Origin: Anthoceros angustus
Taxonomy: Eukaryota; Plantae; Anthocerotophyta
Direction: 5' to 3'
Assembly (NCBI GenBank): GCA_010909165.1
Contig: MU008159.1
Coordinates: 310,001-374,000, forward strand
Length of the DNA: 64,000 nucleotides
Shown: positions 1 through 31,400 of the stretch, piece after piece
Layout of the letters: the number at the start of each line of letters is the position of its first letter
Numbering within the stretch: position 1 is the stretch's first letter
Translations under genes and position numbers: made by a program
Notes under the pieces: model-generated
What the model saw: the letters and a program-made list of their open reading frames with translations, nothing else
What the model was told of the DNA's origin: nothing
The model's database searches: none

Positions 1-769
1 GGTGGCTACGATGCGAGTCAGTCTGGCGCAGGGACCGCGATTTGGGCAGTTAGATGAGTTTTGATAGCCCTCCGAACCGCGTTTGTTCCACGGAGGGTCC
101 GGAGGTCGCCCGAGATAAAGTGTGGGCGGGTGCAGAGGAAGAGTGTTGTTGAATACAATCGTGAGTTTTTGGAGCTGGTGATGGCCATACCGATATGAGT
201 GAAGCGAAACAGGCAGCTACACTCGAGGATTGAAGTTTCACGGTTAAAGAAGTGAAACTACGGACGCCGGACATTGCGGATGCAATGACACTAGCAAAGA
301 CGAGATGCCCTTTACTACGGTCGTCTGGGATAAGGGATGGGGCCTTTACGGATTACATTCGTTGCACAATAACTCCGTTGCCGATTAATTGTGATGTAAT
401 CTTGGGGATGGAGGTGGTGTATAGGAGGCACCCCATTCATTTTAGAGACGGATCACGAGCCATCGAATATCTTCAAACTCAAACACATTTGAGTAGGAAG
501 CGAGCTCATTCACAGGTGAGCACTTCGACAATACAACTTTTCGATTCAACATATTTCGGTGAGCGAGAATCGTGTGGCGGATGTCTGTTGCTGCTTCTTA
601 CTCGCTATTAATGTACAAGCGGGTGATGAGTTCCTTGCGACTTCTGCGAGACCACATTGCCAAGGATGCTCTGCAAGTTACTGGGATCTTGGGCGCATGG
701 ACTCAATCGATAGTCTTCTTCATTTCGAGGTAGGCTTTATGTTCCTCCACTACCACATGTTCGCCTTAT
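1..769 (+). mobile_element. Ty3/gypsy remnant, left arm (gag, protease fragment, RNase H C-terminus, pre-integrase); internally deleted
   Basis: Peptides across frames: gag SVVEYNREFLELVMAIP (~140-190), protease CDVILGME (~390-413), RNase H IEYLQTQ and RQYNFSIQHI..ENRVAD (~460-580), pre-integrase FRGRLYVPPLPHVRLI (~724-770). No RT motifs seen. Confidence 0.8.
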
Positions 770-799
770 AACACGATATCTTGTGAAGGGGGTTAATAT
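770..799 (+). repeat. Left TIR of element 1 (TSD TTAT 766-769)
   Basis: CGATATCTTGTGAAGGGGGTTAATAT (774-799) matches the reverse complement of 13988-14012 apart from one G in a homopolymer. Confidence 0.9.
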
Positions 800-2980
800 T
801 CACGAAGGGGTTTCACGGAAATATCACGAAGGGGTTTGACATGGGTCCATAACTCGTGGTTATAGAGGTATGAATGAATATAGGCGAGAAAAGAAGGGTG
901 AACTTTCGTGTGAAGCATTGACATGAGGTTCATTTCTTGCCGGTGAAGGGGTTAAGGTGCAAGAGGTAACCCTATTTTGGGTGCATATAAGACCCATGTG
1001 AAGGACCATTCACGCCACCGCTGGTCTTCCTAGCCAAAACACCCTTAACATTCATAAAAGGACGGTGATCGGTGGATGAGCTGCGAACCCGTGATGGCGA
1101 CCAAGGATGTTTGAGGAGTAGGGCGGCCGGCGCCGGCCCCTGGCGTTGACCTATTGGGAAAGGCGGGTAGTAGCAGGCCTTTGCTCATTGTGTGTACACA
1201 AAGACTATATGTGGGGTGAGTGGGTGGCTTCCGCACACCATAAATTGAGCCCAAGAATATAATCACATTGTTAAAACCCAAAGACTACAATCGGCATACG
1301 GAAAACGTGGATAGTTCCGCGTCATCGCACACAAACATGCCGTGAGCTACACATGTGTTGCTGTAATATGCCGAATGCCAAGCCATTAACTACTACCATA
1401 CTTCCTCCATGTCCTCCCGCTTATGGAAATGGCTTGCACATCGAAAATTCTATAGCATGTGAAGTCTACGAGGTATCTGAGAAAGCAGCACAACCAATAT
1501 TCTATCATGGGCCTACACTCTTTTGAGACATATGTGTCTGTGAGGAGCACTGAGCACGCATAGCCTCCCAAGATCCCATGCAAGATGACACAACATTGAG
1601 GGCTTTCTACTCTTCTCCGGGCCACTCCATCATCTTGTTGGGTCCGGCATCATGACCATCATCTTCACTATCCTCGGTGGGACTTTCACTCATTGGTTGA
1701 ATGAAGCCTCAACGCAATGAACTTCTCTTTGATTGCCTTCTTATCTACAGTACAAGTGTCTCGCGTAGTCAATGTGAACCCATAATAGAGGATGACAGTT
1801 TCGTGAACAAAAACCTTTTGGATATTTTTTGATGGATGGATTTCGCCCCTTTTCCCTGCATTGCTCGCAGTCCGTGGCATCCTCCGATTAATATTCACGA
1901 AGGGGTTTCACGGAAATATCCTCAAGGGGTTTGACATCCGCAACTCGTGGTTATAGAGGTATGAATGAATATAGGCGAAAAGAAGGGTGAACTGTGTGAA
2001 GCATTGACATGAGGTTCATTTCTTGCAAGAAGGGGTTAAGGTGCAAGAGGTAACCCTATTTTGGGTGCATATAAGACCCATGTGAAGGACCATTCACGCC
2101 ACCGCTGGTCTTCCTAGCCAAAACACCCTTAACATTCATAAAAGGACGGTGATCGGTGGATGAGCTGCGAACCTGATGGCGGCTGTGGACCAAGGATGTT
2201 TGAGGAGTAGGGCGCCGCCGCCGGGCGCCTCTCGCGCTCGACCTATTGGGAAAGGCGGGTAGTAGCAGGCCTTTGCTCGTGTGTACACAAAGACTATATG
2301 TGTGGGGTGAGTGGGTGGCTTCCACCATAAATTGAGCCCAAGAATATAATCACATTGTTAAAACCCAAAGACTACAATCGCATACGGAAAACGTGCCCGA
2401 TCGTTCCCGCCACATATCGCACACAAACATGCCGGGCTACATGTGTTGCTCGCCAATATGAATGCCAATGCCATTAACTACGCCATACTTCCTCCATGTC
2501 CTCCCGCTTGTACAGTGGAAATGGCTTGCATCGAAAATTCTATAGCATGTGAAGTCTACGAGGTATACAGAAACGGCACAACCAATATTCTATCATGGGC
2601 CTACACTCTTTTGAGACATATGTGTGAGCAACACTCAGCACGATAGCCTCCCAAGATCCCATGCAAGATGACACAACATTGAGGGCTTTCTACTCTTCTC
2701 GACGCCACTCCATCATCTTCACTGGGTCCGGCATCATGACCATCATCTTCACTATCCTCGGTGGGACTTTCACTCGGTTGAATGAAGCCTCGCAACGCAA
2801 TGAACTTCTCTTTGATTGCCTTCTTATCTACAGTACAAGTGTCTCCGCGTAGTCAATGTGAACCCATAATAGAGGATGACAGTGAACAAAAACCTTTTGG
2901 ATATTTTTTGATGGATGGATTTCGCTCCCCCTTTTCCTCGCATTGCTCGCAGTCCGTGGCATCCCTCCGATTAAATATTC
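793..2980 (+). repeat. Tandem duplication, ~1095-bp unit (793-1887 / 1888-2970)
   Basis: Near-identical copies with many small indels; junction microhomology TTAATATTC. Confidence 0.95.
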
Positions 2981-5900
2981 TTCTACGTACCTTCCTTAAA
3001 TGCGCATCTGTGTTCGATTACGTACCAATGAACAAGGAAGTGAGGCTGTGGCGAATGCAATTGAACAGTAGTTACCTTGCCAATCCAAAAGGGTCTGTTA
3101 TGCGTGTCTGTGTCCGCGGGAACTGCAACAAACATCCCTGTCTTTATTTCCGCGATATCACCATTCCACCGTTCCATTTCCTGTTGTTGCCTCCCCCGTG
3201 TTTGGTATGCTCCCAAATACATATCTCGTTGTGGGAGGTCCCTTAGCAATGCCTCCTCCAGCACTGCCACATCTGGAACATGGAGAGGTTGAAATTTGCA
3301 TCCACTTCCGATCTTGAGTACCATTTCCAAGGATTACGTAGCACAAGGCCAATGTTGTTTTGCACAATAAGAATCTCCTCTTGGTCCAACGAGCTTCCCA
3401 CCATAAAACTCCGTGATGTCACATAAGGCCTAAGTTCGGAGACCATCCTTAAGATGGGCAACAGGCGATTGGTGATAATGTCACTGTGTTCCTTTTTATC
3501 CCCCTTGGATGCGGTGAGGCGCATTTATGTCGGAAGGACAAATTTCAAACTCAAACCCCTTCCGCTTTCCCATTGTGGCGAGGTGGAATCTTGCTTGCTC
3601 GATAGCAATCACGAACCCGGTCCGCTTTCTCTTCACGTGTTATTTTAAAGCGGTCTTTGGAGCGATAAGTTGTTCAATCTCTTCTGGCTCCATAAGTGAG
3701 GCCTCTCGGCCTTGTCTAATAGGCCACACATATGAAAGTCCGCCACTTGATCAATATCTTTACCTCACGGTGTGACGTGTACGCATGCATCAAGATCTCG
3801 ACAATGCGGGCGGTGTGAGCCTCTTTATGTCTCAAGCTTTTGAGAAGCAAGAAAACATCCGTCGATTTGATCATGCGTATGCGACCAAAAGGAATCCCAC
3901 TTTCACTTTTTCAAAAGTACCCATATCAACAAGCATGTTCAGATATGCAAAAAGCAGCTGGTTCTTGTTCTCCCTGCATGTGTTGTCCAGTTGCAGATAC
4001 AAAACTCTTGGCAGCACCCCCTCGTAATTATGTATAACGTCCTGAATGATGGTGATCGTCAGATTTGCGTCGTTCCGTAAATTCGCATAATGCAAATAGG
4101 CTCTCGCTTTGTGCGTGTAGTTGTGAATCATACACCCAACCACGTGGACTGAAATACGACACTCCTCTACGAGGTTTTTCGGCCACCGGAGAAGATGAGG
4201 AATCTCTGTCTTTTTCTGGTCCATTCCATCTATGGATAGTAGCATATACTTATGTGGCTCCACATAGCTCTTGCTCCTGTGTTTAGACATTTTCTCCGCT
4301 CGGTGGAGGCGCGATGTGCTTCCAAAGCGACTGAAATTTCTCGTGCCACAAACAAATGTCCTAGTCGAAATATATCAAAATCCTCAAAACGGCATCCGTT
4401 AGGCCCTCCAAATGAGCAGAGACGCCGCCGACCTTAACAAGGAAACTTCTTCACATGCAAGAATGCTTATTTGCGGGACGCTCATCCAAATGGGGATACA
4501 TGGCGATAAAGTGGGGGCGGGCGGAGTGGGGGCGGCCGGCCGGCGCCCCTCACAATCTCCTCTTGGTCCAACGCTTCCCACCATAAAACTCCTGTGATGT
4601 CACATAAGGCCTAAGTTCGGAGACCATCCTTAAGATGGGCAACTGCGATTGGTGATAATGTCACTGTGTTCCTTTTTATCCCTTGCGGCGTTGAGGTGTC
4701 GGAAGGACAAATTTGAAACTCCAAACCCCTTCCGTTTCCCATTGTGGCGAGGTGGAATCGCTTGCTCGATAATCAAAATCACGAACCCGGTCCGCTTTCT
4801 CTTCACGTGTTATTTTAAAGCGGTCTTTGGAGCGATAAGTTGTTCAATCTCTTCTGGCTCCATAAGTGAGGCCTCTCTCGGCCTTGTCTGCCACATATGA
4901 CCGAAAGTCCGCCACTTGATCAATATCTTTACCTCGGTGACGGGTGTCGCATGCATCAAGATCTCGACAATGCGGGCGGGGTGTGAGCCTCTTTATGTCT
5001 CAAGCTTTTGAGAAGCAAGAAAACATCCGGTCGATTTGATCATGCGTATGCCCGACCAAAAGGAATCCCACTTTCACTTTTTCAAAAGTACCCATATCAA
5101 CAAGCATGTTCGGATATGCAAAAGCTGGTTCTTGTTCTCCCGCATGTGTTGTCCGATTCGGATACAAAACTCTTGGCGACCCCTCGTAATTATGTATAAC
5201 GTCACGAATGATGGTGATCGTCGGTTGTCGTTCCGTAAATTCGCATAATGCAAATAGGCTCTCGCTTTGTGCGTGTAGTTGTGAATCATACACCCAACCA
5301 CGTGGACTGAAATACGACACTCCTCTACGAGGTTTTTTGGCCACCGGAGAAGATGAGGAATCTCTATCTTTTTCTGGTCCATTCCATCTATGGATAGTAG
5401 CATATACTTATGTGGCTCCACATAGCTCTTGCTCCTGTGTTTAGACATTTTCTCCCGCTCCTGGTGGAGGCGCACGGTGCTTCCAAAGCACTGAAATTTC
5501 TCGTGCCACAAACAAATGTCCTAGTCGAAATATATCAAAATCCTCAAAACGGCATCCGTTAGGCCCTCCAAATGAGCAGACATCGCCGACCTTAACAAGG
5601 AAACTTCTTCACATGCAGAATGCTTATTTGCGGCAGCTCATCCAAATGGGGATACATGGCGAGATAAAGTGGGGGGAGAGGGAGGGCGGTGGGCGCCGGC
5701 CGACCGCGCCCTCCAATCTGCTTTCCCGATTTGGGGCGCGCCGGCCGCCCGGCCAGCGCACGTCCACGCTCCCCAGTGCATTTCGGTTGGGAAGCCGTGG
5801 CGGCTCATCTTTGCCTCTCGATTGGGAGGGAGTGAGCAAGCGGCTTCGTGGTCGTGGAAACCACTAAATACCGGGCGGCACCTGAAGCATTCCGTTTGGA

Positions 5901-6700
5901 AACCAAACACAAACACGGTTATAGAACATGCACGTACATGCATCTCATATGAGCAATTGGTATTGGAAGAGCACATCCGCTCCATCGGGTAGTGAAGCAA
6001 ATCCATAGCGGTGAACAACCTCATGGAGGACACATTGGTGCAAATTACCTTGATCTTCCTTGTGCATTGTGTTCGATAGTGCTCTTGGACTGCACAAAGC
6101 GAGCATGTTGAAAACCTGTTGGACTTGAGATTTTCTTGTTGGGAAGTTGCTTCTCCACAATTTCAAGAACCATGGGTACTTGACGTGGCGAGTGTTAGAG
6201 TTTTTTGGACGCTTGTACAAGGTCCATATTTCCAACTTTGTATACGTGTCGGGCGATTAAAACATCCAAGTTTGGCGGCCGCTCCATAAACGTGGCGTTG
6301 TCCATCCACGAAAGGGCATCCATCGCATCGTCAGTGCCTTGGGTTTGGTTCAAATCCATCCCAAGGTGATTCCGAATGACTCGCTCTTTAGCTCCTCATA
6401 CCTCCTGTGGCCAAGACAATGTACTCTTCTAAAAGCCTTCAAGCGGCCGGCGCGCTCGCCCCATGACATGTGTCACCACTTTCGCCTATCACCTCGGGAT
6501 CCGATGGGTGAACAAGAGCTGCAGATATGTCTCCTGTTCTGTCTCCCCATGAAGAAAGTACCGTTGCTCTTGAAATCGCGCTTTCCCCAACCGCAAACAC
6601 ATTTTTATGCAACAAGGCTTCTTGAAATCAGATCATTGTATCCCCTTCGCTTTTCAACGACACTCCAGCTTCTCTTCTTGATGATATAACAACGCCCTTG
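2601..6700 (-). pseudogene. Frameshifted DDD/DDE-type transposase, Sola-like (family assignment inferred)
   Basis: Ordered motifs on minus strand: KAFRRVHCLGHRRYEELK (~6443-6387), FLKLWRSNFP then RFSTCSLC (~6170-6092), H..ER.KMSKHRSK, LLSIDGMDQKK, YLQLDNTCRENKN, GFLLVGHTHDQIDRMFS (ORFs 3871-4290, 5000-5344, 5074-5511), then C-terminal FWIGKV..VHWY and an acidic tail. Confidence 0.85.
3372..5719 (+). repeat. Tandem duplication, ~1182-bp unit (3372-4553 / 4554-5714), duplicating the transposase core
   Basis: Two copies of the DGMDQ/QLDN/GHTH core; junction microhomology AATCT. Confidence 0.95.
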
Positions 6701-6714
6701 TTGGAGCCAGAGAC

Positions 6715-7320
6715 TCACTCAAAGGCTTGGGATGGAAGGAACGACATGCATCGTGGTGGCGCTCGAATCTTCATTGTCGTCAATGGGACCTTCCTCAACC
6801 GGTGAGCGGACGCAATCAATCTCCGAAAACAAACCACGGCGTGCAACCGTCGATGTATCTGGGAGAACGCCATACGCCATTCGGGAAGCTTGAGCGTCGG
6901 TTGGATGGGCTTCCCTCCAACATCAAATTCGATGCAAATTCCTAGGTGTTGGAGGAACACCAGCGGACCATGGCGGGGATGGCGGCGTCTTGGCGTATCT
7001 GGAACAACAATATCGGAAGAATGCATCAAAATCCCACAACCGAGATAGACTAGCGTCCGTTCCCATATGGAAAAATCATCCTCTACCTTCATTATCAACA
7101 CGTCTTTCGGAATGGCAAAACGCACTCGACGGTGATGCCCGAGTTCGAGGACGTGGTGGCACATCAGTCTACTCGCTTCTCCATCTTTACGGAAACGGAC
7201 ATTGTGAAGAGAAACCTTCTTCCCATTGTTCATCCACGCAACCGGATGCACTAAGCGAACTCGATCCGAAAACAAGATAGGGGTGAAAACCAAGTAATCC
7301 TTCCAAAAGGCCGAACTCAA
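6715..7320 (-). CDS. Unidentified 201-aa ORF upstream of the transposase (possible N-terminal domain or separate gene)
   Basis: Open frame with globular-looking composition, same strand as and immediately 5' of the transposase motifs; no family recognised with confidence. Confidence 0.35.
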   Translation of the reverse strand: MSSAFWKDYLVFTPILFSDRVRLVHPVAWMNNGKKVSLHNVRFRKDGEASRLMCHHVLELGHHRRVRFAIPKDVLIMKVEDDFSIWERTLVYLGCGILMHSSDIVVPDTPRRRHPRHGPLVFLQHLGICIEFDVGGKPIQPTLKLPEWRMAFSQIHRRLHAVVCFRRLIASAHRLRKVPLTTMKIRAPPRCMSFLPSQAFE

Positions 7321-7651
7321 ACCTCTTCGCTAGGTGGTGTGGGTGAGCCGCAACATGGTATCGCACAACTTGTAGAAGAGCGTCGATTGAAACCACACTC
7401 GCGTCGTTTGAAACCATCGCCGGCGGGTCTTGGAAGAGACCTCAGTGTGAGGAAAATGGTGAAGATGGCCATTGTCTTTATGGATAGCGTCGCGCATAGA
7501 TGGGTAGGATATTATGTTCCTCTGTAATAACGACAACATGATGGAGTTCACAATCTATATCTAACGGTATATCGCGCCGTCCTCCGCTTTTATTGTCCAC
7601 ATTGTGCCCCGGCCGTCACCCAAGTCAATAGGGTTATGGTTCATATCGTGG

Positions 7652-7732
7652 TTTATATCGGTATATGGATATCTTGGCATAAGTTAATACAGCATGTTTT
7701 TGGGCTATAAATACCGGTTGAGGAAACCCTAA
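7652..7732. promoter_or_regulatory. Putative bidirectional core promoter between divergent element-1 genes
   Basis: Plus strand: TGGGCT (7701-7706), TATAAATA (7706-7713), telo-box AAACCCTAA (7724-7732). Minus strand: TATAAA at 7652-7657. Confidence 0.4.
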
Positions 7733-7756
7733 TTACTATTTGTTTTCTCTTGCCAC

Positions 7757-9200
7757 TTGCCGTCACGGTGGGCGTTACGCCACTTCACTTGAGAATACGA
7801 GGAGCGTCTTGCTGGCGGTGTTGCCCGATTTGGAGAGGTGTCCGTCCACAATTCCACGAATCCTCCCAGCGCCCTTGGCTGGGATTCGGCTATCAGGCGG
7901 GCCGGGGTTGGGGAGGCAGGGCCGGGCATTCCTCGTGCATCAATCGGCGAGTGCGAGTGAGGTTCGTCTACTTCCATGTTAAACAATTGTGCCCTTCCAA
8001 ATTCGTGATGTGTGATGCAGGTTCATTCTTAAAGATGGCGGCGGCGGAGCAAGAAGGACTGGCGATTCGATCCTCCGATCCCGGCGGCAGAGAAGAAGGC
8101 AAAGCGATTGCGACGAAGACATCCATCGCGCGGACGAGGTTCCGATCGAGGAAGGCGGTGGAAGGAAGTTTGGGAGGCGCGCACATTGGAGGGGGCCATA
8201 TAGCCTCTGGCGGGCAAAATCAGGAGCATGTCTTGGGAAAACAAGCGAGCAGGCTGGCGGGCAAGGGCGGAAGGAGGAGGCAAGGCTTCAAAGCATCCGG
8301 TGCACCAATTCGTCGCCATTCATATGAAGAGAATGCACATCCATGATGGGTGGCGGATAGACCCTATTGTCATTGTGCGAAGATTGGATGCTAGTCCGGG
8401 ATCCGCACCGGAGGTTGAAGCAAGACATGGACCCCTTGCTCAAACTACGGATAATGGGGTATCGGGGCTTTGCCGTCACGGTGGAGCGTTCGCCAGCACT
8501 TCCACTTGAGGAAAGTGAGGAGCGTCTTGCTGGCGGTGTTGCCCGATTTGGAGAGGTGTCCGTCCACAATTCCGAATCCTCCCTTGGCCGCTTGGGATTG
8601 CAGCTATCAGGCGGGCGCTCGGGGTTGGGGAGGCAGAGCCGGGCATTCCTCGGTGCATCAATCGGGTGCGAGTGAGGTTCGTTCTACTTCCATGTTAAAC
8701 AATTGTTTTGCCTTCCAAATTCGTGATGTCTTGTGATGCGGGGTTCATTCTTAAAGATGGCGGCGGAAGGCGGAGCAAGAAGGACTGGCAGGGCGATCCT
8801 CCGATCCCGCGGCGGCGGCGAGAAGAAGGCAAAGCGATTGCGAAGACGAAGACATCCTAAATCGCGACGAGGTTCCGCGCCGAGAGGAAGGCGGTGGAAG
8901 GAAGTTTGGGAGGCACGCACATTCGGAGGGTGGGGGCCATAGCCTCTCTGGGCAAGCAAAATCCGGAGCATGTCTTGGGCAGAGCAGGCGGGCAAGGAGG
9001 CTGGAAGGAGGAGGCAAGGCTTCAAAGCATCCGTGCACTTCCCGCCATTCATGAAGAGACTGCACATCCGCATGGGTGGCAGATAGACCCTATTGTCATT
9101 GTGCGGAAGGATTGGATGCTAGTCCAGATCCGCACCCAGGTTGAAAGCAAGCATGGACCCCTTGCTCAAACTACGGATAATGGGGTATCGGGGCTTTGCC
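7757..9200 (+). repeat. Tandem duplication, ~713-bp unit (7757-8469 / 8470-9200)
   Basis: Repeated GCCGTCACGGTG...GGGGCTTTGCC block; junction microhomology TTGCC. Confidence 0.95.
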
Positions 9201-11430
9201 AAATCGAGCAAGGTGTAATGGGCAAACATGGACATGAAGCGAGGGGGAGTTCACGCTATTTGCACCACCGCCATACGAGTTCGATCGTCATCCAGACCCC
9301 GAGTTTCTGGTCTTATGTTCTCGGCCTCCAAGGATTCAACGCCAAAAATGTGCACCTCCGAATAGTGGAAGAGTTCGCGAATGCATGCGACACGAGTTTC
9401 AACAACGACAACGTATGCGAAACCCTCCGACTTTGATGACTAACATTCAACTTGTTTGTTTGTTTTCCCACCACCTTTGGTAGGAATGGCCCTTATAAGG
9501 GCAATCGTGGGAAGATAAGCAAGGCAGTCATTGATCATAGGAGAGAGCATCGATGAGAAGGGTCGCACACATCAAAGAATGGTTGAAGCGGCAAGCAGCT
9601 TCCGAGCGAACTTGGCCCATCCGATGAGGAAGAGGGCCCGATTCTGACGTCTTTGGGACATTCGATGATGAAGTCTCTGGGGCAGGCGAACATAGGGATG
9701 CGGCAATTTTACCTTGGCTTGGCATGGGCCATCTATGAGTGTGCACACGGATGTAGTGAATCGGGGAGCGCGGCCCGCGGCGCAGGCAAAAGTGCGGGGC
9801 TCGGACTTGGCCACTCCGGATCCCAACCGGTTTATCCAGTTCGAAGGAGATAGCGGGCGGGCGGCCGTGGCATACCTCCATCCACAAGAGCCCTTCCGGA
9901 CGCGGTGGAAGAGGTGGACGTTGGAGGCAGAGAGAGGAAGTGGGTGCGGGGGACACAGGTATGGACGGAGGAAGAAGGCGGGCGGCCGGCGCCTCCACCA
10001 TAGGAGAGAGGCGACCAGCCGACGCTCAAGGCGCGCCCTGCGGTGTTGGATTCCAGGGGTGCGAAGAAACCCGGCGTGGAAGCACGAGAGGAGGAAGTGG
10101 GTGCGGGGGACACGGTATGGACGGGAGGAAGAAGGCGGGGCCGGCCGGCGCCCTCCTCTCCATAGAGAGACGACCAGCCGGCGGCTCAAGGGGCAAGCGC
10201 CCTGCGGTGTTGGATTCCGGTGCGAAGAAACCGTGGAAGCACGGAGCGGGGGAAGAAAAAGAAATCAAAAAGGCGGGCAAGGAGGCTGGAAGGAGGAGGC
10301 AAGGCTTCAAAGCATCCGTGCACTTCCCGCCATTCATGAAGAGACTGCACATCCGCATGGGTGGCAGATAGACCCTATTGTCATTGTGCGGAAGGATTGG
10401 ATGCTAGTCCAGATCCGCACCCAGGTTGAAAGCAAGCATGGACCCCTTGCTCAAACTACGGATAATGGGGTATCGGGGCTTTGCCAAATCGAGCAAGGTG
10501 TAATGGGCAAACATGGACATGAACGAGGGGGAGCCGGAGTTCACGCTATTGTGCACCACCAGGCCATACGAGTTCGATGCCGTCATCCAGGACCTCGAGT
10601 TTTACAGGTCTTATGTTCTCAGCCTCCAAGGATTCAACGCCAAAAAATGTGCACCTCCAGCAATAGTGGAAGAGTTCCGCGAATGCATGCGCCAGCACAC
10701 AGTAAGTTTCCAACAACGACACTGTTATGCGAAACCTTCCGACTTTGATGACTAACATTCAAGTTGTTTGTTTGTTTTCCCAGCCACCTTTGGTAGGAAT
10801 GGCCCTTATAAGGGCAATCTGTGGGAAGATAACCGAGACAGTCATTGATCATAGGAGAGGCATCGATGAGAAGGGTCGTGCACATCAAAGAATGGTTGAA
10901 GAGGCGGGCGGTCAAGACTTCCAGAGCGAACTTGGCCCCCGATGAGGAAGAGGGCCCGATTCACGACGTCTTTGGGACATTCCGATGATGAAGTCTCGGG
11001 GCAGGCGAACATAGGGATGCGGCAATTTTGGCTTGGCGCATGGGCCATCTATGAGTGTGCACGGATGTAGTGAATCGAGGAGGCGGCCGGCCGGCCTGAG
11101 CGAAAAGTGCGGGGCTGGACTTGGCCCTCCGGATCCCCGGTTTATCCGGTTCGGAAGGAGATAGCGATCGGGCGTGGGCCGCACCTCCATCCACAGAGCC
11201 CTTCCCGGACCGTGGAAGAGTGTCTTGACGTTGGAGGCACAGAGGAGGAAGTGGGTGCGGGGGACACGGTATGGACGGAGGAAGAAGGCGGAGGCGCCGG
11301 CCGGCGCCCTCCTCGTAGGAGGAGACGACCAGCCGCCTCAAGCAAGCGCCCTGCGGTGTTGGATTCCAGCGAGGTGCGAAGAAACCCGGCGGTGGAAGCA
11401 CAGGAGGAAGAAAAAGAAATCAAAAAAGGG
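8986..11430 (+). repeat. Tandem duplication, ~1285-bp unit (8986-10270 / 10271-11430), with a nested ~157-bp duplication at 9934-10245
   Basis: First ~250 bp of the two copies read as identical; later parts differ by indels. Confidence 0.95.
10513..10755 (+). CDS. Orphan ORF fragment (ORF-A) inside element 1; frameshifted copy near 9228-9436
   Basis: MDMNEGEPEFTLLCTTRPYEFDAVIQDLEFYRSYVLSLQGFNAKKCAPPAIVEEFRECMRQH has protein-like composition; preceded by MDPLLKLRIMGYRGFA. Confidence 0.35.
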   Translation: MDMNEGEPEFTLLCTTRPYEFDAVIQDLEFYRSYVLSLQGFNAKKCAPPAIVEEFRECMRQHTVSFQQRHCYAKPSDFDD

Positions 11431-11544
11431 CACAAGAGGAAGTGTTTGGTGGCATTCCCATGCATATTTTGACGAAGAACGCCTGCGACGCGATCACGAT
11501 GCACCCCTCACTCGCCTAAGGGATTGACTTACGGAAGAAGGTTG

Positions 11545-11930
11545 TCATGGAGCAGTGCTAGTGAAATTGGAGAACTTACGACCCGACCGCATATTCGCGG
11601 ATCGTGATTCCGAGGGTTGACGAGGCATGGGCCAATTATCCGGCGAGTTATTTCGAAGGAGGATAGAGGAGGGTGTATTGCCACTATTATGTATGATTGA
11701 TCCAAGTGAGTGCAATGACCTCGGCAAGTTGGAATTTGGAAGAGATGGCGGGCGAAAAAATATGTTATGGGGTTCTTGGTGGGAACCACACTTATGCGAC
11801 CATGAAACATCTATGCGATATATCACCGGGGAAGAAGAGGTTCCAATGTTGAAGCGCATGTCTATTGCGGGCTTACTATACGCAATGCGAGTCCACCCAT
11901 CACAACACTATCGGACAAACGGAAGAAGAT
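11545..11930 (+). pseudogene. ParB/Srx-like domain (frameshifted), 5' of the methyltransferase-like region
   Basis: VLVKLENLRPD, DEAWANY, RRRIEEGVLPLLCMIDP, VLGGNHTYATMKHL (GGNH at 11778-11789), later HN motif; order resembles the ParB N-terminal fold. Confidence 0.6.
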
Positions 11931-12089
11931 GAACTTCATTGAGCGGTCCGATACTTAAGAGATGAGCTTTTGATAGCAAAACGAGAAGGATGACAATGGC
12001 ATGGAAGTACAATCGTACACAAGGTGCTTGATTGAGGATGATGAAGGGCGAGCGATGTGTATAAGGAACAAAGTGGATAACCGCACACA

Positions 12090-13381
12090 CATTTTATGCA
12101 TTGCCAAGCGGGAAGGAAAGGTATGGGCCAATGTGGACTCCATTTTCTAGTGGGAGGCTGGAGAACTCCGGACGGAAGAAGCATCTACCGGGAGCAAGCA
12201 AGGAAAGGGAAGCGCAAGTTGGTGAGCGAGAAGCAAATGGACACGTATGCGTGGCCAAGGACATGTTGGCAAAGCCATGGAAATCGTTCAAGGCATACTG
12301 GGAGAGTGCGGTCGGCAAATTCGTCGCTGACGAGAAAGGTGTTAAGCGGCACGATTGATTTGAAGGGCATGGATGAGGAGATCACGCGGAAGAAGTTTCA
12401 TGTCATACAAGTGGCGATGGTCAAGCACAGGGTGCTCTTCATTTGAGGAGGTCAGAGGAATATCCGTTGCATTCCAGACGATCTTGTCGGTTTCAAGCTT
12501 TTTTGGAAAGGTGAGTTTCTTGTCCATGCCATGCGCAAGGTCATGGGGCGCGGCGCCCTCCATTCTTTCCACTTTGGACTAACAAACTTGTGGTTCGCGA
12601 CAAGGACATTGAGGTCTTGTCCAAACTTCCGGATGCCTTCAAGATTTTATTTTGAGGTGAACAATTGGAAAGGGGCTGGAGGACGGCGTGCTTTAGCGGA
12701 CAAGGACCTTGAGGAGGATGGAGGTGTTCAGTGTGCCCTCCTCGGATAAACAAGACCAAGTGGGAGATTTGGCGGACATGCGTGGATTTCGAGGGCCGAC
12801 ACACTTATGGTGATGGAGCGTTCAAGGGGTTTCAAATTGGGCCCTTGGACAAAGCGTGTTGACAAGCGGATGATGGACCTTTGCGAGCTTTGCGGAAAAC
12901 AACTTGGATGAGTTGAGAATGATTGTCATGCATGGTGTGGAGGAGGCTCACACCGTGAGTCCATGCGAAGGTGGTGCAAGAAAGGGGCTTGGTCTCATTT
13001 GTATGGGACAAGACCAACATGAACAATAGCAGGTGGGTTGAAACCGTGGAATATGTCACATGGGTTGGGGAATGAAAGATGGGTTCACGGGGATAGAGTT
13101 CCAATGATGCCCAATGCCATGCGGCACTTTCAACAATGGGAGGTCGTGATCGCTCACGATACGGTTGTGAAGAAGCAGTGTACATGTCCCACAAGTGGTG
13201 GTTTGCCCATACGAGGCCTCTGGGCCTTATGATGAAACTTATCCGAACCTTCTCGAGAGGGATTGGATTTTGGATGTATGCTCGGGGTGGGACAACGTTC
13301 TTGGCGGCTACTATGCGGATGTATTGCTATAGAAGGCGACTTGAGGTGTGCGGATATATTGCACAAAGGATTTGGGCATGA
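12090..13381 (+). pseudogene. Beta-class DNA N4C/N6A methyltransferase-like gene (frameshifted)
   Basis: Reconstructed order: ADMRGF..LMVM-(D)VP-RGF (motif IV position, ~12807-12833); FVWDKTNMNNSRWVETVEYVT (~13000-13060); RPLGLMMKLIRTFSR-GDWILDVCSG-GTTFLAA..CIAIEGD.EVCGYIAQRI (13213-13381). This matches the KP..L..LI..S..GD.VLD.F.GSGTT..AA...R..IG.E C-terminal SAM-binding block of N6_N4_Mtase. Confidence 0.8.
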
Positions 13382-13987
13382 GGTTACGCACGATCGAAGA
13401 AGAATCGACATTTGACGCCCACCGCAGAGGACTTGCGCAATTGGCAAGGAGGTGTATCGTGAGAAGGACTCCTGCAAGCTCGGGGTTGTTTCCTTAAGCA
13501 TAAGGCGTGAAGACCAAAAGGAGCACTTTTGACGGAGGACAGCAATCCTTGGATAGCGTTTGGCAGCCTTCCACGACCCGACGGCGAGACAAGACTAAGC
13601 GAAGACACTAGGGCCTTGGGGAGAGCAGCGCTTCGATGAAGAGGAAGTGGGCGCATTCATCGCTATTGTGATGGATTCGAGTTTGCTCTACCCGGACGAG
13701 TCCCAAGTTAGTAGGGAGTAGGCTTAGTGATCTCATGTCTGTGCATCTGCGCTTTTTAGTTCGCAATCACTTATGGACCCGTTGCATTGAGGCAATTGAT
13801 GTCTTCCCATGTTCCAAAGAATCAATGAAAGCCGCCGGCCGCGCCCCCGCACTGCTTTGTTCGCGAAAAGAGTTTTTCTCAATTCCTACTGTTGGAACAT
13901 GGTCGTCTGCTTTTAAAAAGAGCCAAAACGCGTATTTCGGACCGTGAATTGTGCTAAGGGGTTTTCATTTCACGGAAGGGGGTTCGG

Positions 13988-14017
13988 ATATTAACCCCTT
14001 CACAAGATATCGCGGTT
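13988..14017 (-). repeat. Right TIR of element 1 (TSD TTAT 14018-14021)
   Basis: ATATTAACCCCTTCACAAGATATCGCGGTT is the inverted copy of the left end. Confidence 0.9.
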
Positions 14018-15190
14018 TTATACTATTTCGTGAGGCTCATGAGACTCGCAGACATCAGGCATTCACCGTACACTTTACAACTTGCGTGTACGGTATCACG
14101 AAATGGCGTGATGATCACTACTTGATCCATCTTTGTGGCATTTGTCAACGGATCAAGGCTCCCTGACTAAGGTACCGGTCTTCTTCAGCCTATGCCCATT
14201 CCCTTACTCCGTGGAGCAAGTCACTCTTGATTTCGTAGTGGGTTTACCTTGACCCCTGTGATATGATGCGCCCTTGTGTTTACCGACAAACTTACGAGAA
14301 TGATCCACTTAGCCCCACTACGTAGCATGTTCAGCGATGGATGCGGTGAGCTATACCTTCGTTATATCTGAGCTCCATGGCTTGCCTCAGCATAGTAAGT
14401 GATCGGGACCCCGGTTTTCTCGATTTGGCAAGCTATGCATCGCATGGACTACAAACTAAATTGTATCTATCAACAAGCCACCCGGTGATGGAGCTACAGG
14501 CGGGCTATTCAAACCATTGAAGATCTTCTTGAGCATATGTCGATCAGGAAAAATGGGAGCAATATCTACATTTAGCGAGTTTGCTTTCAACAACTCTAAG
14601 AATGCCCAGGAACAACACCCTTTTTGCTCTTTATGGATTTCATCCCGGGACCATGTTACAACTGCTTCTGCTGTGACGCGCACTGCGGCCATGGACTTCC
14701 TCCAAGCAGGGCTCGGGTTCTTGACAAGTTCGGCAACATGTGTTTGAGGCACAAAATCGGCGGATCCTACAAACCAACCGCCATCGGCGACCACGACATT
14801 TTCCACAGCGATCGGTGCTATTGTCTACTCGTTTTCTACCCCCACTCCTTGATGGATCCGGAAATTGGCGATCGATGGATCGGACCTTTTCCGTACAGTC
14901 ATCGGCCCTGCGGCCTATCGCCTCGCCCTTCCTCCTTCCTACAAGTGCCACAACGTCTTTCCCTGCTAAAGCCGTTCCTAGGCCCCTCCTTCCCGACCTC
15001 CACCGTCTTGGACTTGGAAAACCCATGTATGAAGTGGACCGCATCCTCAAACACCGCACCCTTGGCTGTCTTGAATATCTACACTGCGGCTATCCTCTAT
15101 CGAGGCCACAGGAGCAGCGCGCAACCTTTTCCCATTGTGGCGCCTTGCGCCTACCATGCCTCCCGTCGTTTCGAGGCCGAAACCACTTCA
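14018..15190 (+). mobile_element. Ty3/gypsy chromovirus integrase with GPF motif and chromodomain, right arm
   Basis: ILFREAHE..CGICQRIK (zinc finger), QVTLDFVVGLP, EFAFNNS, RWIGPF, SLLKPF, then MYEVDRILKHR..LEYL..GYPL (chromodomain, ~15025-15150). Confidence 0.9.
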
Positions 15191-18695: not shown

Positions 18696-20707
18696 TGACA
18701 CCACATTGCACGCTGGATTAATTTTTTCAAACACCGAATCTACCTAAAGTTGTGATGCTCCCGCATGCACTTGGTATCATAGTGCATGCACACATGCATC
18801 CATGCATTATCATGCTTTTGAAAACAGCTTTTTAAAACATACATAGTCACCTGGCCAGTCCTCGGCCTCGACAAGCATGTAGGACCATTTGCACCTATCT
18901 ATTTAATTAGTCCTTGGTCACTCAACAAACCAACCATTTGTGTCTTTGTTCTCGAGGACTTTTGTACCTTTTTCCATTTATCTTATAGTCTCTCAGGCTT
19001 TCGCAAAAAAAAAACAAACAAACAAACAAACAAAACCATTTGCCATCTATTGAATTAGTCCTTGGTCCTTGAAAAGCAATACCATTTGCCATCTATTTAA
19101 TTAGTCCTTGGTCCTTGACAAGCAATGCCATTTGCAATCTATTTAATTAGTCTTGGGTCCTTGGTCCTTGACAAATAAGATCTTTTACTATTTATGTAAT
19201 TCGTCCTTGGTCCTCGACATCCAAGACCATTTGCTTAATGTCAAAATAACTATCTAGCTAGCTATACATGCATTATACAATACTTTAGGTAGCCATGCCA
19301 TGACATTGTCTTGCTCGATTGTCTAGTGGAAGAGGTAGGACAGCAAGTTCTTGCGAGATCATTCTCCAAGGAGGACCACTGCCACCCACATGAACGAAAG
19401 TAGAGAGACGAGGGTATACACCGAATACATTATGATGGATCCGAGCAGCAGATGCGTATGTGGAGGTGCACAAGGAGGCCAAGAGCTAGTGTTGGGCAAA
19501 GCGTGGGCGCGGAGTGGAGGCAAGTCAGTGGAGTGCAAGTGCAGCGAGGTGAAGGCGCAGTGGAGGAGCAACAACGGCGAGCGTCAGTGGATCCAAGTGA
19601 GCCTGGGATGGAGCTGGGCCGAGATCAACCCGTGTGCTTGCTCATGACCCGCAGATGTTGTCTCTCAATAGGTAATGGCCAGACAATTTTCCCATCCGTG
19701 GAGTTGGACATGGCCATCCCGCAGACGCCCCGGATGCACCCTCAAATTAGCAATAGGAGTAGAGATCCACTTTCTAGGGGCCCATATCGTCGCCGAGAGT
19801 TCCACATTCAAATGGGCACGCCTTGGGACTCCACCCTAGGAGTCCGGCCGACGCTTGGGAGCGCAACCCTTAGTAGCCCAACCCCTTGGAGGCCGAACCC
19901 TTGGAGCCCGACACCTTGGAACCTAAGCCCTGACTCCGCGTTACATCTCTCACGAAGGCCAACCCCCTATTAGCCCGCCGCATGGAATAAGTAAAAAAGC
20001 ATACGCCCGGAGTCTAATTCCTGGAGCTAGGTGTACGCGTGGATTGCCACACTCTTGTGTGTACTCTTTTGAGAGTAATTAATTGAGCATCAAAGTGGTT
20101 AGTACATGGCCCGCTACTTGGAGGCCTAGTATCGTGTTTTGTAATAATCGTGTTATTTATAAAATAAAGTTCCACTCCATAACAAAACAACACAAAAAAG
20201 TTCCTTCTATTTTATGAGATTCCTCAAGTTCCTTGGGTTCGGAGTGTATTGACGAGAACCTAAGCCGTGTGTTGCTTGCACGCATTAAATATAGTACGTA
20301 ATTATCTACGCTTTGAGGAGATATCATGCTATAGTTAATTTGACGTACTCTAAGTTGTTGTGGGTACAATTAGCCCTTGTCGTCTTCTTTAACTCATCTT
20401 CCTAAGAAGAGAAAAACAATTACAGACTCTTTAAGCACATGGTGCGCACGAGGCAGACCAAGAAGAGGATCGGTAGCATTAAAATTTTAGTCTTAATGAA
20501 GGATGGGAGAAACTCTGTATGGAGGAAAGCAAGTAAGGATTCCATACTTTGAGACAAGTGTGAGGCGGTCGGTTTAAGATAGGACAAAATGTAGAACCAT
20601 TTCGATATATTACGGTAGCTTGTTGCTGCAAACGGGTAATCAATTGAGGGAGAGAAGATGAAGGGGATGTCGCGCCACAGTTGCATAGTCGTCATGGTAC
20701 CTAAACT
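18696..20707 (+). repeat. Dispersed partial copy of the ~3.7-kb unit found in tandem at 53080-64000
   Basis: Colinear with ~54710-56790 from TGACACCACATTGCAC to GTCATGGTACCTAAACT; includes three copies of the 46-bp minisatellite (19036-19170). Confidence 0.9.
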
Positions 20708-21102
20708 TGTCACAGCAGCTGAAGAACCAGCCACGAAGGCGACATGGCCAAATCCAGTGAGGAGGACCGGTAAAGCGGCGGAACGACTTAGGGTACCACC
20801 AATTTTCACGCGTTCCCGCACGGAACGGACCCAGATAGGCATGCCCCGTTTAGACACCCCGTTAGATATCCCGTTTAGGTCATCCATAGATAGCGTATTG
20901 ATCAGATTAGGTAAATACCTGTAAATAGGCTTTAGGTACGTTAGACTGTAACCGTATTGGTTACACGGAGCTTCTTGGCATACGGCCAGCCCGCTCCTAC
21001 ATGTACAGCGTTCACGAGTAACTATGCAGCCATTCCCGAGCTCAACCCGCACGCTCCCGGCGTCGCAACGATCCCGAGGAGTGTTGCATCTAGTATCAGA
21101 GC
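20708..21102 (+). mobile_element. 5' LTR (20708-21088) and PBS (21091-21102) of a gypsy element
   Basis: TGTCACAGC start exactly where homology to the 3.7-kb unit stops; ends GTGTTGCA; TAGTATCAGAGC is a one-mismatch iMet PBS. Confidence 0.65.
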
Positions 21103-21417
21103 CCGCTTTCCTGCCGGCAATCAGACATTTGCTATTGGAATCCCTGTGGCGCGGCCAGAATGAGCGAACGTGTCTCACCACGTGAGGTGGAGAGGCAGAT
21201 CTCCAATAGCGATCAAGAGGGACATCTGCTGGAGGGAATCGGCGGTCGGGTACGCCAGAGAGGTAGGCATGCACCCACCTCGTCCAATCGCGGTAGACTG
21301 ACCAACGCACGGGTCCTTGGAAAAGTGCCTGCAGAGAAGAGCCGAGCCGCGAGTCGAGGATCGGCAGCTTGCGAGCGACCCAATCTCAGGTGACAGGGGC
21401 TACAGAACATCCCGAGT

Positions 21418-27300: not shown

Positions 27301-28467
27301 GAGGCCTCCGGCTGCACCTGTTGCAGCTCCTTCCTGTCATCATCATGCGGTTAGTTCTCCCACCTTCACATGGAGGCTCACGTTTTCTTCCCTCACTTCT
27401 CGTAGCTGGTTGGTCATCTTTGCCTGAAGTTTCAATATAATTGAAAATATGCAGAATGTTTTTAATATAAATTGATTGAACTACATTTTCTTGATATATG
27501 TGTGTATATATGTTCATAAAAAGAACTCAATGTTTTAAACAACGCCAGAACGATGCTATCCAAACGTAACCCTAATGAACCGGTGTGTAGGTATTTAACT
27601 TAACTTAACTACCAAAGCCCTAATCATTATTCCAAGACATATATCTTAATACTCCCACTTGTAATGATTCGGGCACGCTCTAGACATTTGGTACCCTCTC
27701 GCCTCCCGTGAACGCAGCAGGCCCAAGATACTCGATCGCTCCCAGCGCCACATAACACTTATGGAGAGTATACAAACCGGTGTGATGGCGGTAGAGTGCG
27801 CCGCACTTATAACCCCTGTTCTTGGTTTCAAGATTGCTCGGTGAGCTCATCACCAAAAGATCGAACACCGATTCTCCTTGCGCCACATGTCTTGATCCTC
27901 GATCACACACAGGCGCCGCCCACGTGATGCTCGGGGCGATTCGCGCCAAGGACAACTACCAAAGATATGAAGTTGCTTGATGCTCGGTAGAGGAAGGTTG
28001 GCGGCCGCAAGGAACAACGAAAAGCTTTGGGCGCGAGCGCAGCTGGTTGAAGCCAACATGGCTGGTCCTTCCATCAATCCCGGCGATCACTCCTCGAACG
28101 AGAGGAGAAGGAGGAGGTTATGCCCTTCATCGGTGCCTCGATGTCTCATATTACAAAGAACCCAGCGGGCGTGTGCTGTGAAGCTTAACCCACGATGAAG
28201 AACTCGATTGTGACTTACGTGAGTTTCCATGTTCTCCAATCGGTACAAAGCTTGGGTTGGCCTTGATGAGCTAACTATAAAGAGGGTGAAGGTTCTTCGC
28301 TGCAGATGCTTACGACACGTCGTCGGTGTATACGATGAAGTGTCTGCTCCTCTTTAGCTCTTTATTTCATTGCTGTTTCTTGTTCTTGACAATTGTTTAT
28401 ATCTCCCACTTGTTGGGTGCAGAGTCCACAAAGAAGATTAAGGAGGAAAGGAGGCTGGAGGATGAAG

Positions 28468-31400
28468 AGAAGGCTTTCGGTTCAAGAGTGAAGCCACACA
28501 AAAATCCGTCGACACCGATTTCAAGACGATCACAAGATGAGTCAACTCACGATGTTTTGATGGAGTTGGAATAGAGATTCGAGGATATTCACTCGATAGC
28601 TCTAACTCCTCGGGCTTTTAGGAATATTGTGTGTTACTCGGATAGGAGAGCTTGCTCTCCCATTCCCAAAGCTGCATGTGCTTGTGATGAGCTTCTTTGC
28701 TCAAAGCCTTTGTTAGTAAATCCGGGTCCGTGCCGGAACATATTGCAAATCTATTTTCCTTCCGTCACAAGCCCCTTATATAGTGGTATTCAACCTCCAC
28801 GTGTTTTGTACGTGCGTGAAACATCGGATTTCTTGCTAATGCCATTGAGCCCGATTGTCATGTGGATTGTTGTGCAAGTAGGTATCAATTCCTAATTCCT
28901 TGAACAAAAGCTTACACCACACTATTTCTTTTATTACTTCTTTGTCGGGACCTCGCCTCTGTTGAAGAAAGGGCAACGTTGGTTGCTTCTTACTAGACCA
29001 GCATACAGGCCCTCCAGCTGAAATGACATAGCCCTCGATTTTCTCTATGTCTCTGCATAGTCTCGATCATACCTCAAGATCTTGAGGCTTTCCTTTTTAT
29101 TCTTATAAGCTATGCCAATTTTGCTGTGTTGCTTAGAAGGCACGTTTCAAGTTTGTCCGTGTTCCTTCCGGGTTTTCCAAGAACTGAGAGCACACTGGTG
29201 GTATATGCAACTTCTAGTCTTGTAGTATTGCTTGCATATAGTTTGCCTACACCTTGCATAAGGAACTCCTGTCATTTGTCCTTGTCTTCTTGAGTTGAAG
29301 GTGACATGAGCTTGCTAAGTTTCGACCAAATGGCATAGGTGTTGATACAGTTTTGCATCCTTAAGACCTAGTTGCTCAAAGACAATCTAATAGGTAGCGG
29401 GTTGTGTTAGTGTCATTACACGAGTCCGCCTATTTCTTTGAACATGAATTCCTAGGAGCTCAGAAGGTCCTAGGCAATTCATTTTGAATTTTGTTGCTAA
29501 CACATGTTATACTTGTGATGAAGGTCGACTATTGATAAAATCAGTCATCAACGTAAACCGCCAAGTAGCATATGACATTCCTTTGAGGTAAATATACAAG
29601 CTACTATCTCGCTGACTCTTGGTGAACCCTAGCTCTAGCAATTCTTTTCTAGGGCTGCATTCCATTTCATGGTCGACATTTTAAGCCGTATAGACACTTG
29701 ATTAGTCTGCAAGCTTGGTGCTCTTTTCCTTTAACCACATATCCGGTGGTCAGCATGTAGATTTCAACATCTAACTTTACATATAGAAATGTTGTTTTCA
29801 CGTCATCTCTGGCTCATAGTTAAAGTGTGTGGATATGGCGGGATGATTCGAGTTGAAAGCTTGACCCGGAGAGAAAGTTTCAAGATAATCCAATCCAGGA
29901 TTTGGGAGAAGCCTCTTGCAACCAAGCGAGCTTTATACATCAAAGGTACCATCTGCTTACTTTCAGCTTGAAAACCCACTTACAAGTCACCATTTTTTAC
30001 CGAGGTAAGTCTACAAGCTCCATGTTCCATTTTCAATTAATGAGTCATACTCGGTGAATAGCCTTCTCCCACTCTTTGTGATCAGTCCTAAGTGCCTCCT
30101 CTCATATGATTGAGGTTCAATGGGATCAAGGGAAGAATTATCGGCATGAACGCCACATGAGAAGAAGGATTCACGTCCGGAGCTTGATAAAAGTCCGGAG
30201 GCGCCTATGACGAGTAGGATACCGCGGTTGGCAGAAACTTGATGATCGTCTTGAAGGTCGGTGCATTCGGTTTCAATGGGTGCAGCGTTCGTACAACTTG
30301 TTCGGAGGATGTTGGTCCCGTAAGTCCAGTCCTCATCGATTGTCAGTGCATTGATATGTGCGATTCTGCCTATGTCCTCAACATCAACCAACTCAAAACC
30401 AATGGATCTTCCCCTGCGAACAATGTCCTCCGGAGGAACAACCCTGTATGGATTGATCAAAAGAAGTGTCATCATCCATTGGGCGATGTCCGTCTTGAGC
30501 GCTCCCCGAGACCCAATTTTGGTTTTCATTGAAGGTAACACTCCTTGCATAAACAACTTTGTTCTTAGATACATCATAGAGCTTATAAGCTTTTAATTCC
30601 TTCCGTAGCCTAACATAAGTAGCTTTCGGCCTTATCAAACGACTTTTGCCTTTTCTCTTTAGGTATAAAAGCATATGCAACACATCCAAATGTGCAAGTG
30701 AAGAATAGAAGGCTTTCTCAGAGTGAAGCCACACCAAAAATCCGCCGCCGACACCGATTTCAAGACCGAGCATCAAGATGAGTCAACTCACACGATGTTT
30801 CTGTCGAGTTGGAATAGAGATTGTGATATTACCGATTCGATAGCTCTAACTCCTCGGGCTTTTAGGAATATTGTGTGTTACTCGAATCGGATAGGAGAGC
30901 TTGCCTCCCATTCCCAAACGCCGCATGTGCTTGTGATGAGCTTCTTTGCTCAAAGCCTTTGTTAGTATGTCCCGAGTTGTCCTGTGGAACATATTGCAAA
31001 TCTATTTTCCTTCCCCACAAGCCCCTTATATAGTGGTATTCAACCTCCACGTGTTTTGTACGCGTGAAACATCGGATTCTTGCTAATGCCATTGAGCCCC
31101 GATTGTCTGTGGATTGTTGTGCAAGTAGGTATCCGAATTCCTAATTCCTTGAACAAAAGCTTACACCACACTATTTCTTTGGTCAGACCCTAGACTACTG
31201 TTGAAGAAAGGGCAACTGCTGGTTGCTTCTTACTAGACCAGACAGTGCCCTCCAAGAATCGAAATGACATATTCGAACTGATTTTCACTTTGTCTCCCCG
31301 TGATAGTCTCGAGTCAGAATACCTCAAGATCTTGAGGCTTTCCTTTTATTCTTATAAGCTATGCCAATTTTCTTTTGTGTAACGGAAGGCACGTTTCAAG

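Follow-up and report, generated by a model that had tools for sequence, protein, structure and literature searches.

A putative two-gene DNA transposon of Anthoceros angustus pairing a DUF7869 transposase gene with a ParB-fold/amino-methyltransferase gene

The closest described counterpart of the locus reported here is Sola1-1_Ec32 of the brown alga Ectocarpus, a 21.5-kb element with a ParB-like/methyltransferase gene on the strand opposite its transposase gene; its authors propose that this accessory protein binds and marks its own transposon, and they also refer to green and red algal transposons (Genome Biol 2025, PMC12477816). Here we describe an element in a 64,000-nucleotide (nt) stretch of Anthoceros angustus (Anthocerotophyta; assembly GCA_010909165.1, contig MU008159.1, positions 310,001–374,000 of the forward strand), hereafter called the window. 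Positions 770–14017 of the window are probably one copy of a two-gene cut-and-paste DNA transposon, and by analogy we place this element with good confidence, as a streptophyte representative, in the published Sola1-1_Ec32 type. The two are alike, by description, in being large cut-and-paste elements with an opposite-strand accessory gene; they differ in that Sola1-1_Ec32 comes from a brown alga and is longer (21.5 kb and 1104 amino acids (aa), against about 9 kb after removal of duplications and family proteins of about 600–790 aa here). The combination had not been recognised as a described family in the first-pass annotation of this DNA, but the Ectocarpus element already has it. No earlier report of such an element in streptophytes was found in the literature searched, which does not prove absence.

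Similar domains occur in several other settings. The accessory genes PAG2 and PAG3 of red-algal Plavaka (KDZ) elements encode PF01555 methylase plus SET and ParB plus 2-oxoglutarate (2OG) oxygenase proteins (bioRxiv 10.1101/2025.02.11.637652). Like the window element, the Plavaka elements are DNA transposons with PF01555 and ParB-like domains, and inverted-repeat arrays adjoin the Plavaka ParB gene; there, however, the domains sit on two separate proteins and the transposase belongs to another superfamily. A ParB-type domain is also joined to an amino-methyltransferase in phage and prophage proteins (ParB-Tls loci; PMC4738411). These phage and prophage ParB-methyltransferases are the likely ultimate source of the module, but they are prokaryotic, belong to a DNA-packaging context and have no transposase, whereas the eukaryotic family has introns (seen in the related locus L006, from an ENA assembly) and a D-x-P-[Y/H] motif IV. 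Among eukaryotes, MpDN4MT1a/b of the liverwort Marchantia and N4CMT of bdelloids are beta-class methyltransferases of the N6_N4 type that came from bacteria (bioRxiv 10.1101/2021.02.12.428880; PMC8885841). Unlike the gene considered here, they are host genes with a canonical TSPPY/SPPY motif, and neither a ParB domain nor a link to a transposase is reported for them. The anti-silencing factor VANC of VANDAL21, a Mutator-like element of Arabidopsis, is said to act on the epigenetic state of its own element via element-specific motifs. VANC is neither a methyltransferase nor a ParB protein and belongs to an unrelated superfamily, so that the likeness is one of concept only.

Termini and transposase gene of the element

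The element is 13,248 bp long and is bounded by terminal inverted repeats (TIRs) of about 30 nt and by TTAT on both sides, in agreement with the TIRs and 4-bp target-site duplication (TSD) of the first-pass annotation (Table 1). The left end reads TTAT followed by AACACGATATCTTGTGAAGGGGGTTAATAT, and the right end, when reverse-complemented, reads ATAA followed by AACCGCGATATCTTGTGAAGGGG-TTAATAT. The repeats are imperfect around a perfect 18-nt core, and since the imperfection affects the outermost 5–7 nt, the 'AACACGA termini' annotated earlier hold for the left end and not for the right one. With 3 mismatches allowed, the 18-nt core is unique to the two ends in the 64 kb, and two matches to it were reached in 0 of 100 shuffles. 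Four matches of the 18-mer in JGI metagenomes were judged to be due to chance. GAAGGGG(T/G)T motifs are grouped subterminally at both ends of the element, and the left subterminal repeats are candidate transposase-binding sites. Four tandem duplications total about 4.3 kb, and their subtraction leaves an element of about 9.0 kb by our recomputation, where 8.8 kb had been given before.

The minus strand of the element carries the transposase gene. A 167-aa stop-free piece (3874–4374, minus strand) matched Pfam DUF7869 (PF25273) with E = 5e-27 and 95.1 bits against a cut-off of 26, and a frameshift-tolerant DUF7869 profile scored 596, 483 and 145 against a background of at most 55, with signal within the element only. 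Homologs from sequencing-run and metagenome assemblies are up to 62% identical, and that of the liverwort Riccia sorocarpa is 45% identical. Besides 3874–4374, the N-terminal piece at 5948–6256 and the C-terminal piece at 2986–3333 are conserved with full-length Riccia genes (759–1170 aa). The catalytic core occurs twice because of duplication 2, and the frame-corrected cores contain 7 and 11 frameshifts and 0 stops in about 270 codons each. Three acidic motifs, IDgMDQKK, LQLDNTsrENKN and GHTHDhIDQMF, are conserved in an alignment of 37–46 homologs, so the earlier description of a 'D-D-D' transposase is a fair reading; the three motifs are never all in frame within one window core copy as assembled, and the catalytic residues are predicted ones. 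A literature search found no paper naming DUF7869.

The Sola superfamily (Sola1/2/3), reportedly described by Bao et al. in 2009, is said to have a TSD of 4 bp and a transposase in which three acidic residues are conserved. The window element has a TSD of this length and a transposase family with three acidic motifs, and together with the published Sola1-1_Ec32 element these traits are consistent with the label 'Sola-like' given in the first pass; the Sola1-like assignment, made by analogy, rests on the 4-bp TSD, the acidic triad and the Ectocarpus comparison.

The accessory gene, its family and its pairing with the transposase

The plus-strand gene was identified through intact relatives. Locus L006 has intact open reading frames (ORFs) upstream of, and divergent from, its DUF7869 gene; one of these ORFs matches PF01555 N6_N4_Mtase at 33.4 bits (cut-off 26.7), and another carries YYVLGGNHFVEAQRKL, which is near the window's YGVLGGNHTYATMKHL. 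Because L006 carries DUF7869 together with a divergent PF01555-positive gene, the window gene can be tied to the methylase family. Direct comparisons of the window were negative: 30 plus-strand stop-free pieces gave no Pfam or PHROG match at E ≤ 10, no window piece scored above the PF01555 gathering score, and no [DNS]PP[YFW] motif was present on the plus strand. Piecewise tblastn of window pieces against loci L001–L007, and of L006 ORFs against the window, recovered the transposase core only. A family hidden Markov model (HMM) built from 13 long members was searched against 2,672 stop-free window pieces and gave 9 matches at E < 10, 8 of them co-linear in the element plus strand (11657–12425) and on the minus strand at 45899–44683. 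The ParB-domain stretch 11657–11984 was matched by both hmmsearch and tblastn.

The gene was followed through its broken frames with a custom frameshift-tolerant aligner of protein profiles against DNA, run on both strands of the 64 kb with the remaining window as the null. In half-bits, with a background that peaked at about 44, the ParB-like block scored 167 at +12177, the linker block 96 at +12484 and 77 at −45655, the methyltransferase N-part 64.5 at −44961, and the methyltransferase C-part 86 at +13372 and 96 at −44584. Traceback placed the accessory gene at 11657–13372 on the plus strand, with 23 frameshifts and 4 in-frame stops and with the SAM-binding motif I region split over three frames. 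The 'ParB-like and METHYLTRANSFERASE motifs' named in the first pass are therefore real by way of intact relatives and the frameshift-tolerant family profile, and are not directly detectable. The description of one TIR/TSD-bounded element with a minus-strand transposase and a divergent plus-strand ParB-fold/methyltransferase gene is likewise borne out, and these three features, the TIRs with their TSD, the DUF7869 transposase and the divergent methylase gene, form part of the basis on which we read the locus as a two-gene element.

The minus-strand signals belong to a second copy of the accessory gene, outside the element (copy 2 in Table 1). It has about 68% DNA identity to 12192–13280 and contains 12 frameshifts and 5 stops; its motif IV reads VMDVPRGF and its motif I block DWILDACACSGSS...GRNCISIE. 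The frameshift-tolerant profile gave no DUF7869 signal near copy 2, no matching TIR lies nearby, and a word-indexed search with its 169-aa ORF found no match. As a diverged solo relic, copy 2 shows, as far as its sequence can tell, that the accessory family has long been resident in this genome.

An exhaustive search with a 234-aa L006 ORF yielded 200 clusters. Full-length family proteins of about 600–790 aa occur in Ginkgo, Chara braunii (at least 9 genes), Riccia (at least 4) and Adiantum (at least 4), and by sequence the nearest relatives of the accessory gene are these streptophytes. The PF01555 cut-off was passed by 5 of the 10 long members tested first (best, Ginkgo with 65.7 bits) and by 0 of 5 further members; the positive ones include Ginkgo, Chara, Riccia and JGI proteins. 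For the ORF with the N-terminal domain in L006, AlphaFold gave from a 44-sequence alignment a model with a pLDDT of 85.5, and its top 50 Foldseek matches were of the ParB, Noc, KorB, PadC, sulfiredoxin and SbnI types (ParB/sulfiredoxin (Srx) fold), together with Atu1540, whose description carries no family name; the best match had E = 6.7e-5 and probability 1.0. Given this confident model and its matches, the predicted fold of the family N-terminal domain is ParB/Srx. Among the sequences of the PDB, a family profile matched no ParB.

In intact members the C-terminal domain contains D-x-P-[Y/H]-G (DIPHGY, DAPYGF, DFPYGF), YQKP..L..LI and then LD..SGSGT...VE.D. Motif IV precedes motif I in all intact members and in the window (about 12.80 kb, then 13.21–13.37 kb), the beta permutation, and from its motifs and profile matches the domain is assigned as a beta-class PF01555 amino-methyltransferase domain. 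The L006 methylase gene has an intron within motif I, between GSG and TT.

The divergent arrangement recurs elsewhere. In Riccia sorocarpa CM100795.1 (L008), a DUF7869 gene of 813 aa on the minus strand and a PF01555-positive family gene of 689 aa on the plus strand diverge from a 1.9-kb spacer; the two genes of a second Riccia locus (L009), coding for a DUF7869 protein of 1170 aa and a family protein of 691 aa, are arranged likewise, and the layout of L006 is like that of both. Judged by these three loci, the DUF7869 gene and the ParB-methylase gene form a conserved unit.

Two further loci hold family genes in other surroundings. An unannotated DUF7869-like region lies 9.4 kb downstream of a family gene and on the same strand in Chara braunii (BFEA01000138.1; L010, 21394–21921). 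In the hemichordate Ptychodera flava (CM083784.1; L011, 4296–9827), a neighbouring gene of 766 aa, which includes an ORF of 631 aa, diverges from the family homolog XP_070534462.1; this neighbour gene belongs to no Pfam family and shows no DUF7869 similarity, and it may be a different transposase partner.

Condition of the window copy and alternative explanations

Several observations weigh against reading the locus as a Sola1-type transposon with a ParB-guided methyltransferase. Within the window neither a second copy of the exact element nor an empty insertion site was found. Public profiles detected neither ParB nor methyltransferase in the window itself, and the methyltransferase N-part, which contains motif IV, did not rise above profile background in the element. 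The ParBc profile of Pfam matched neither window pieces nor L006 nor full-length members, and the family motif GGNHS..A is without the arginine of the GxxR motif of CTP-binding ParB. TIRs and TSDs of L006, L008 and L009 were not found with the window TIR and subterminal motifs, by pairing of boundary zones or by DNA comparison between loci. Enclosure by termini is therefore demonstrated in the window only.

Motif IV adds to these points. At about 12798–12845 the element reads VMERSRGF where the family has ivDaPYGy, so that D-x-P-[Y/H] is replaced by ERSR here and, in copy 2, by DVPR. Our first guess for this motif, FEVNNWKG / YEVNTWKG, was ruled out by the traceback, which gave VMERSRGF / VMDVPRGF. 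The catalytic motif (D/N/S)-P-P-(Y/F/W/H) does not occur in the window copies, and at motif I, where the family has LD..SGSGT, the element has DWILDVCSG, then a frame break, with GGTT in another frame. Because the motif IV block is at background and ERSR/DVPR replace D-x-P-[Y/H], the enzymatic competence of the window lineage is doubtful. The copy as assembled is, from its sequence, non-functional: both genes are broken, with a duplicated and frameshifted transposase core and without conservation of the catalytic motif IV. With ERSR at motif IV and 23 frame corrections, the copy does not show a competent enzyme for the DNA-marking or anti-silencing module that the first pass had inferred.

Part of this damage may be sequence noise, since it consists mostly of indels and since noisy abutting duplications occur throughout the window. 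Outside the element such duplications lie at 28461–32978, 39522–42415, 53080–62187 and 56648–58802; window-wide they measure 0.7–4.8 kb, have 85–92% identity and affect unrelated sequence, so those inside the element are nothing peculiar to it. A real possibility, somewhat short of an even chance, is that the organism carries an intact, possibly active element, and that the majority of the frameshifts and every internal duplication are sequence or assembly artefacts. Besides the window-wide duplications, noise is suggested by duplicate copies whose differences fall in scrambled patches, separated by identical stretches as long as 253 bp, by transitions about as frequent as transversions between these copies, and by transposase damage of indels only: despite 7 and 11 frameshifts the cores have no stop and are very strongly conserved. 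The TSD and the TIR core are perfect as well. On the other hand, just 19% of the indels are of homopolymer type, unlike typical long-read noise, and a simple explanation by nanopore noise was not confirmed; the path of the accessory gene has 4 in-frame stops, and motif IV differs through substitutions and not through indels.

An alternative that we consider unlikely, while still of some weight, is that in this lineage, and perhaps more widely in the family, the methyltransferase domain has become a pseudo-enzyme without catalytic activity. On that view the accessory protein would be a ParB-type DNA-binding or bridging factor, acting for example in end synapsis or in regulation of the divergent promoters, and would not methylate. 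The position of the aromatic residue in motif IV is occupied by arginine in both window copies (DVPR, ERSR) and by cysteine in some Chara members (DFPCRY), the uneven passing of the PF01555 cut-off (5 of 10 first members, 0 of 5 further ones) points the same way, and DIRS1 offers a precedent for inactive methyltransferase domains in mobile elements (PMC4738411). Against this, Ginkgo, Adiantum, one JGI protein and Chara g66820 keep D-x-P-[Y/H]-G, YQKP and LD..SGSGT...VE.D together, which speaks for catalysis being under selection in some family members at least, and the damaged window copies may not represent the active state.

That the two genes are unrelated neighbours, the methylase-bearing sequence being nested or mis-assembled in a transposase-only element and the pairing meaningless, is very improbable. 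In its favour, TIR enclosure is demonstrated for a single copy only, copy 2 has no transposase, the Chara DUF7869 region is 9.4 kb downstream on the same strand and not divergent, and the Ptychodera homolog adjoins a different gene. Against it, the divergent layout with a repeat-bearing spacer is found at three further loci, which represent two or more other organisms, Sola1-1_Ec32 was published with the same arrangement, and no second TIR pair is seen within the element.

Coding remnants of long terminal repeat (LTR) retrotransposon type (integrase-like and zinc-finger motifs) and long dispersed repeats occupy 49400–52700 (minus strand), 18700–21400 and 53000–64000. The window is transposon-rich, with no obvious host gene.

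Table 1 Features of the element and of the second accessory-gene copy (positions in the window)
Feature	Position	Strand	Basis or remark
Left TSD copy, TTAT	766–769		Direct reading; same as 14018–14021
Left TIR, AACACGATATCTTGTGAAGGGGGTTAATAT	770–799	+	18-nt perfect core at 774–791
Left subterminal repeats, (C/T)ACGAAGGGGTT / GTGAAGGGGTT	785–955	+	At 785, 804, 828, 945
Tandem duplication 1	793–2980 (793–1896 / 1888–2980)		Abutting, 90% identity
DUF7869-family (Sola1-like) transposase gene	2814–6256	−	PF25273 match, homologs, frameshift-tolerant profile
Transposase C-terminal piece	2986–3333, reaching about 2814	−	Conserved with Riccia genes
Tandem duplication 2	3372–5719 (3372–4558 / 4554–5719)		Abutting, 92% identity; re-copies transposase catalytic core
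Transposase core copy A	3528–4355	−	Frameshift-tolerant profile
Transposase core copy B	4745–5545	−	Frameshift-tolerant profile
Transposase N-terminal piece	5948–6256	−	Conserved with full-length Riccia genes
Spacer between divergent genes	7400–11350		G+C-rich, 157-bp tandem unit
Tandem duplication 3	7757–8474 / 8470–9200		In spacer
Tandem duplication 4	8986–10096 / 10271–11412		In spacer
Predicted ParB/Srx-fold domain, core reading ...YGVLGGNHTYATMKHL...	11657–12177	+	Frameshift-tolerant profile, 167 against background 44
Accessory-gene conserved linker	12178–12552	+	Profile block 350–470, 96 against background 38
Methyltransferase N-terminal part	12712–13100	+	Alignment; about 68% DNA identity to copy 2
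Methyltransferase C-terminal block, motif I region RPLGLMMKLIRTF / DWILDVCSG.. / CIAIEGD / YIAQRI	13101–13372	+	Block 600–759, 86 against 43
Right TIR, reverse complement AACCGCGATATCTTGTGAAGGGGTTAATAT	13988–14017	−
Right TSD copy, TTAT	14018–14021		Sequence read
Copy 2, diverged relic of ParB-like/methyltransferase gene, outside the element	44584–46886	−	Profile scores 77, 64.5, 96

Palindromes, proposed mechanism and meaning

The spacer between the two genes contains GCCGGCCGGC palindromes at 9981, 10140, 11082–11095 and 11296. With one mismatch allowed, GCCGGCCGGC occurs 16 times in the window against 1.25 expected (about 13-fold), 11 of the 16 lying in the element and one in copy 2. The element sites outside the spacer are at 1122, 4531–4544 and 5695–5753, and those outside the element at 45510, 34971–35116 and 55969. 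GCCGGCCGGC is a candidate binding or methylation site. In Riccia L008 the palindrome TGTATTCCCRCATACA (TGTAT[TG]C[CG]C[AG]CATACA) occurs 21 times against 0 expected, always within 3246–13424 and thus bracketing the gene pair. Repeat or palindrome arrays stand at the equivalent spacer position in L008 and L006: in the former, a parS-like array of hairpins with 19-nt arms just upstream of the ParB-methylase gene (9153–9734); in the latter, a G+C-rich inverted-repeat array between the divergent genes (5500–6450), the rest of that element being A+T-rich. The spacer of L009 contains a 741-bp tandem duplication of 99% identity (8539–10019), which overlaps a gene annotated as 289 aa long, and spacers with tandem repeats may be typical of the family.

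We infer the following mechanism. The transposase would excise and insert the element through its TIRs and subterminal repeats, while the accessory protein would bind element-specific palindromes by its ParB domain and methylate the element's own DNA (N6-adenine or N4-cytosine). Such methylation might be a self-mark by which the element is either protected against silencing by the host or has its transposition coupled to replication. The element-specific palindromes support the binding and methylation steps of this proposal. An anti-silencing, VANC-like role is suggested purely by analogy.

DNA amino-methylation of plants, as N6-methyladenine (6mA) or N4-methylcytosine (4mC), is rare and contested, and few enzymes for it are known. 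The boldest form of the proposal, to which we give a slim chance, is that the Sola1-type transposons of streptophytes, Chara through Ginkgo, code for an active amino-methyltransferase, guided by ParB, that writes 6mA or 4mC on their own palindromes, GCCGGCCGGC in the window and TGTATTCCCRCATACA in Riccia. If true, land plants would have an epigenetic self-mark encoded by a transposon, and host enzymes, for example the 4mC methyltransferases of liverwort sperm, could have been domesticated from such genes.

The window copy by itself adds little, since its assembled sequence is damaged. Its relatives indicate that, within the plant lineage, a gene of predicted ParB fold with a PF01555 domain travels with a DUF7869 transposase. 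The gene occurs in the stonewort Chara, the liverwort Riccia, the fern Adiantum and the gymnosperm Ginkgo, in some cases with intact-looking catalytic motifs. The element palindromes, concentrated in the spacer, offer concrete targets on which the published idea of self-binding and self-marking could be followed in Riccia, in relatives of Marchantia and in Chara, where genetics and the calling of methylation are practicable, and the family is a candidate source for host 4mC enzymes.

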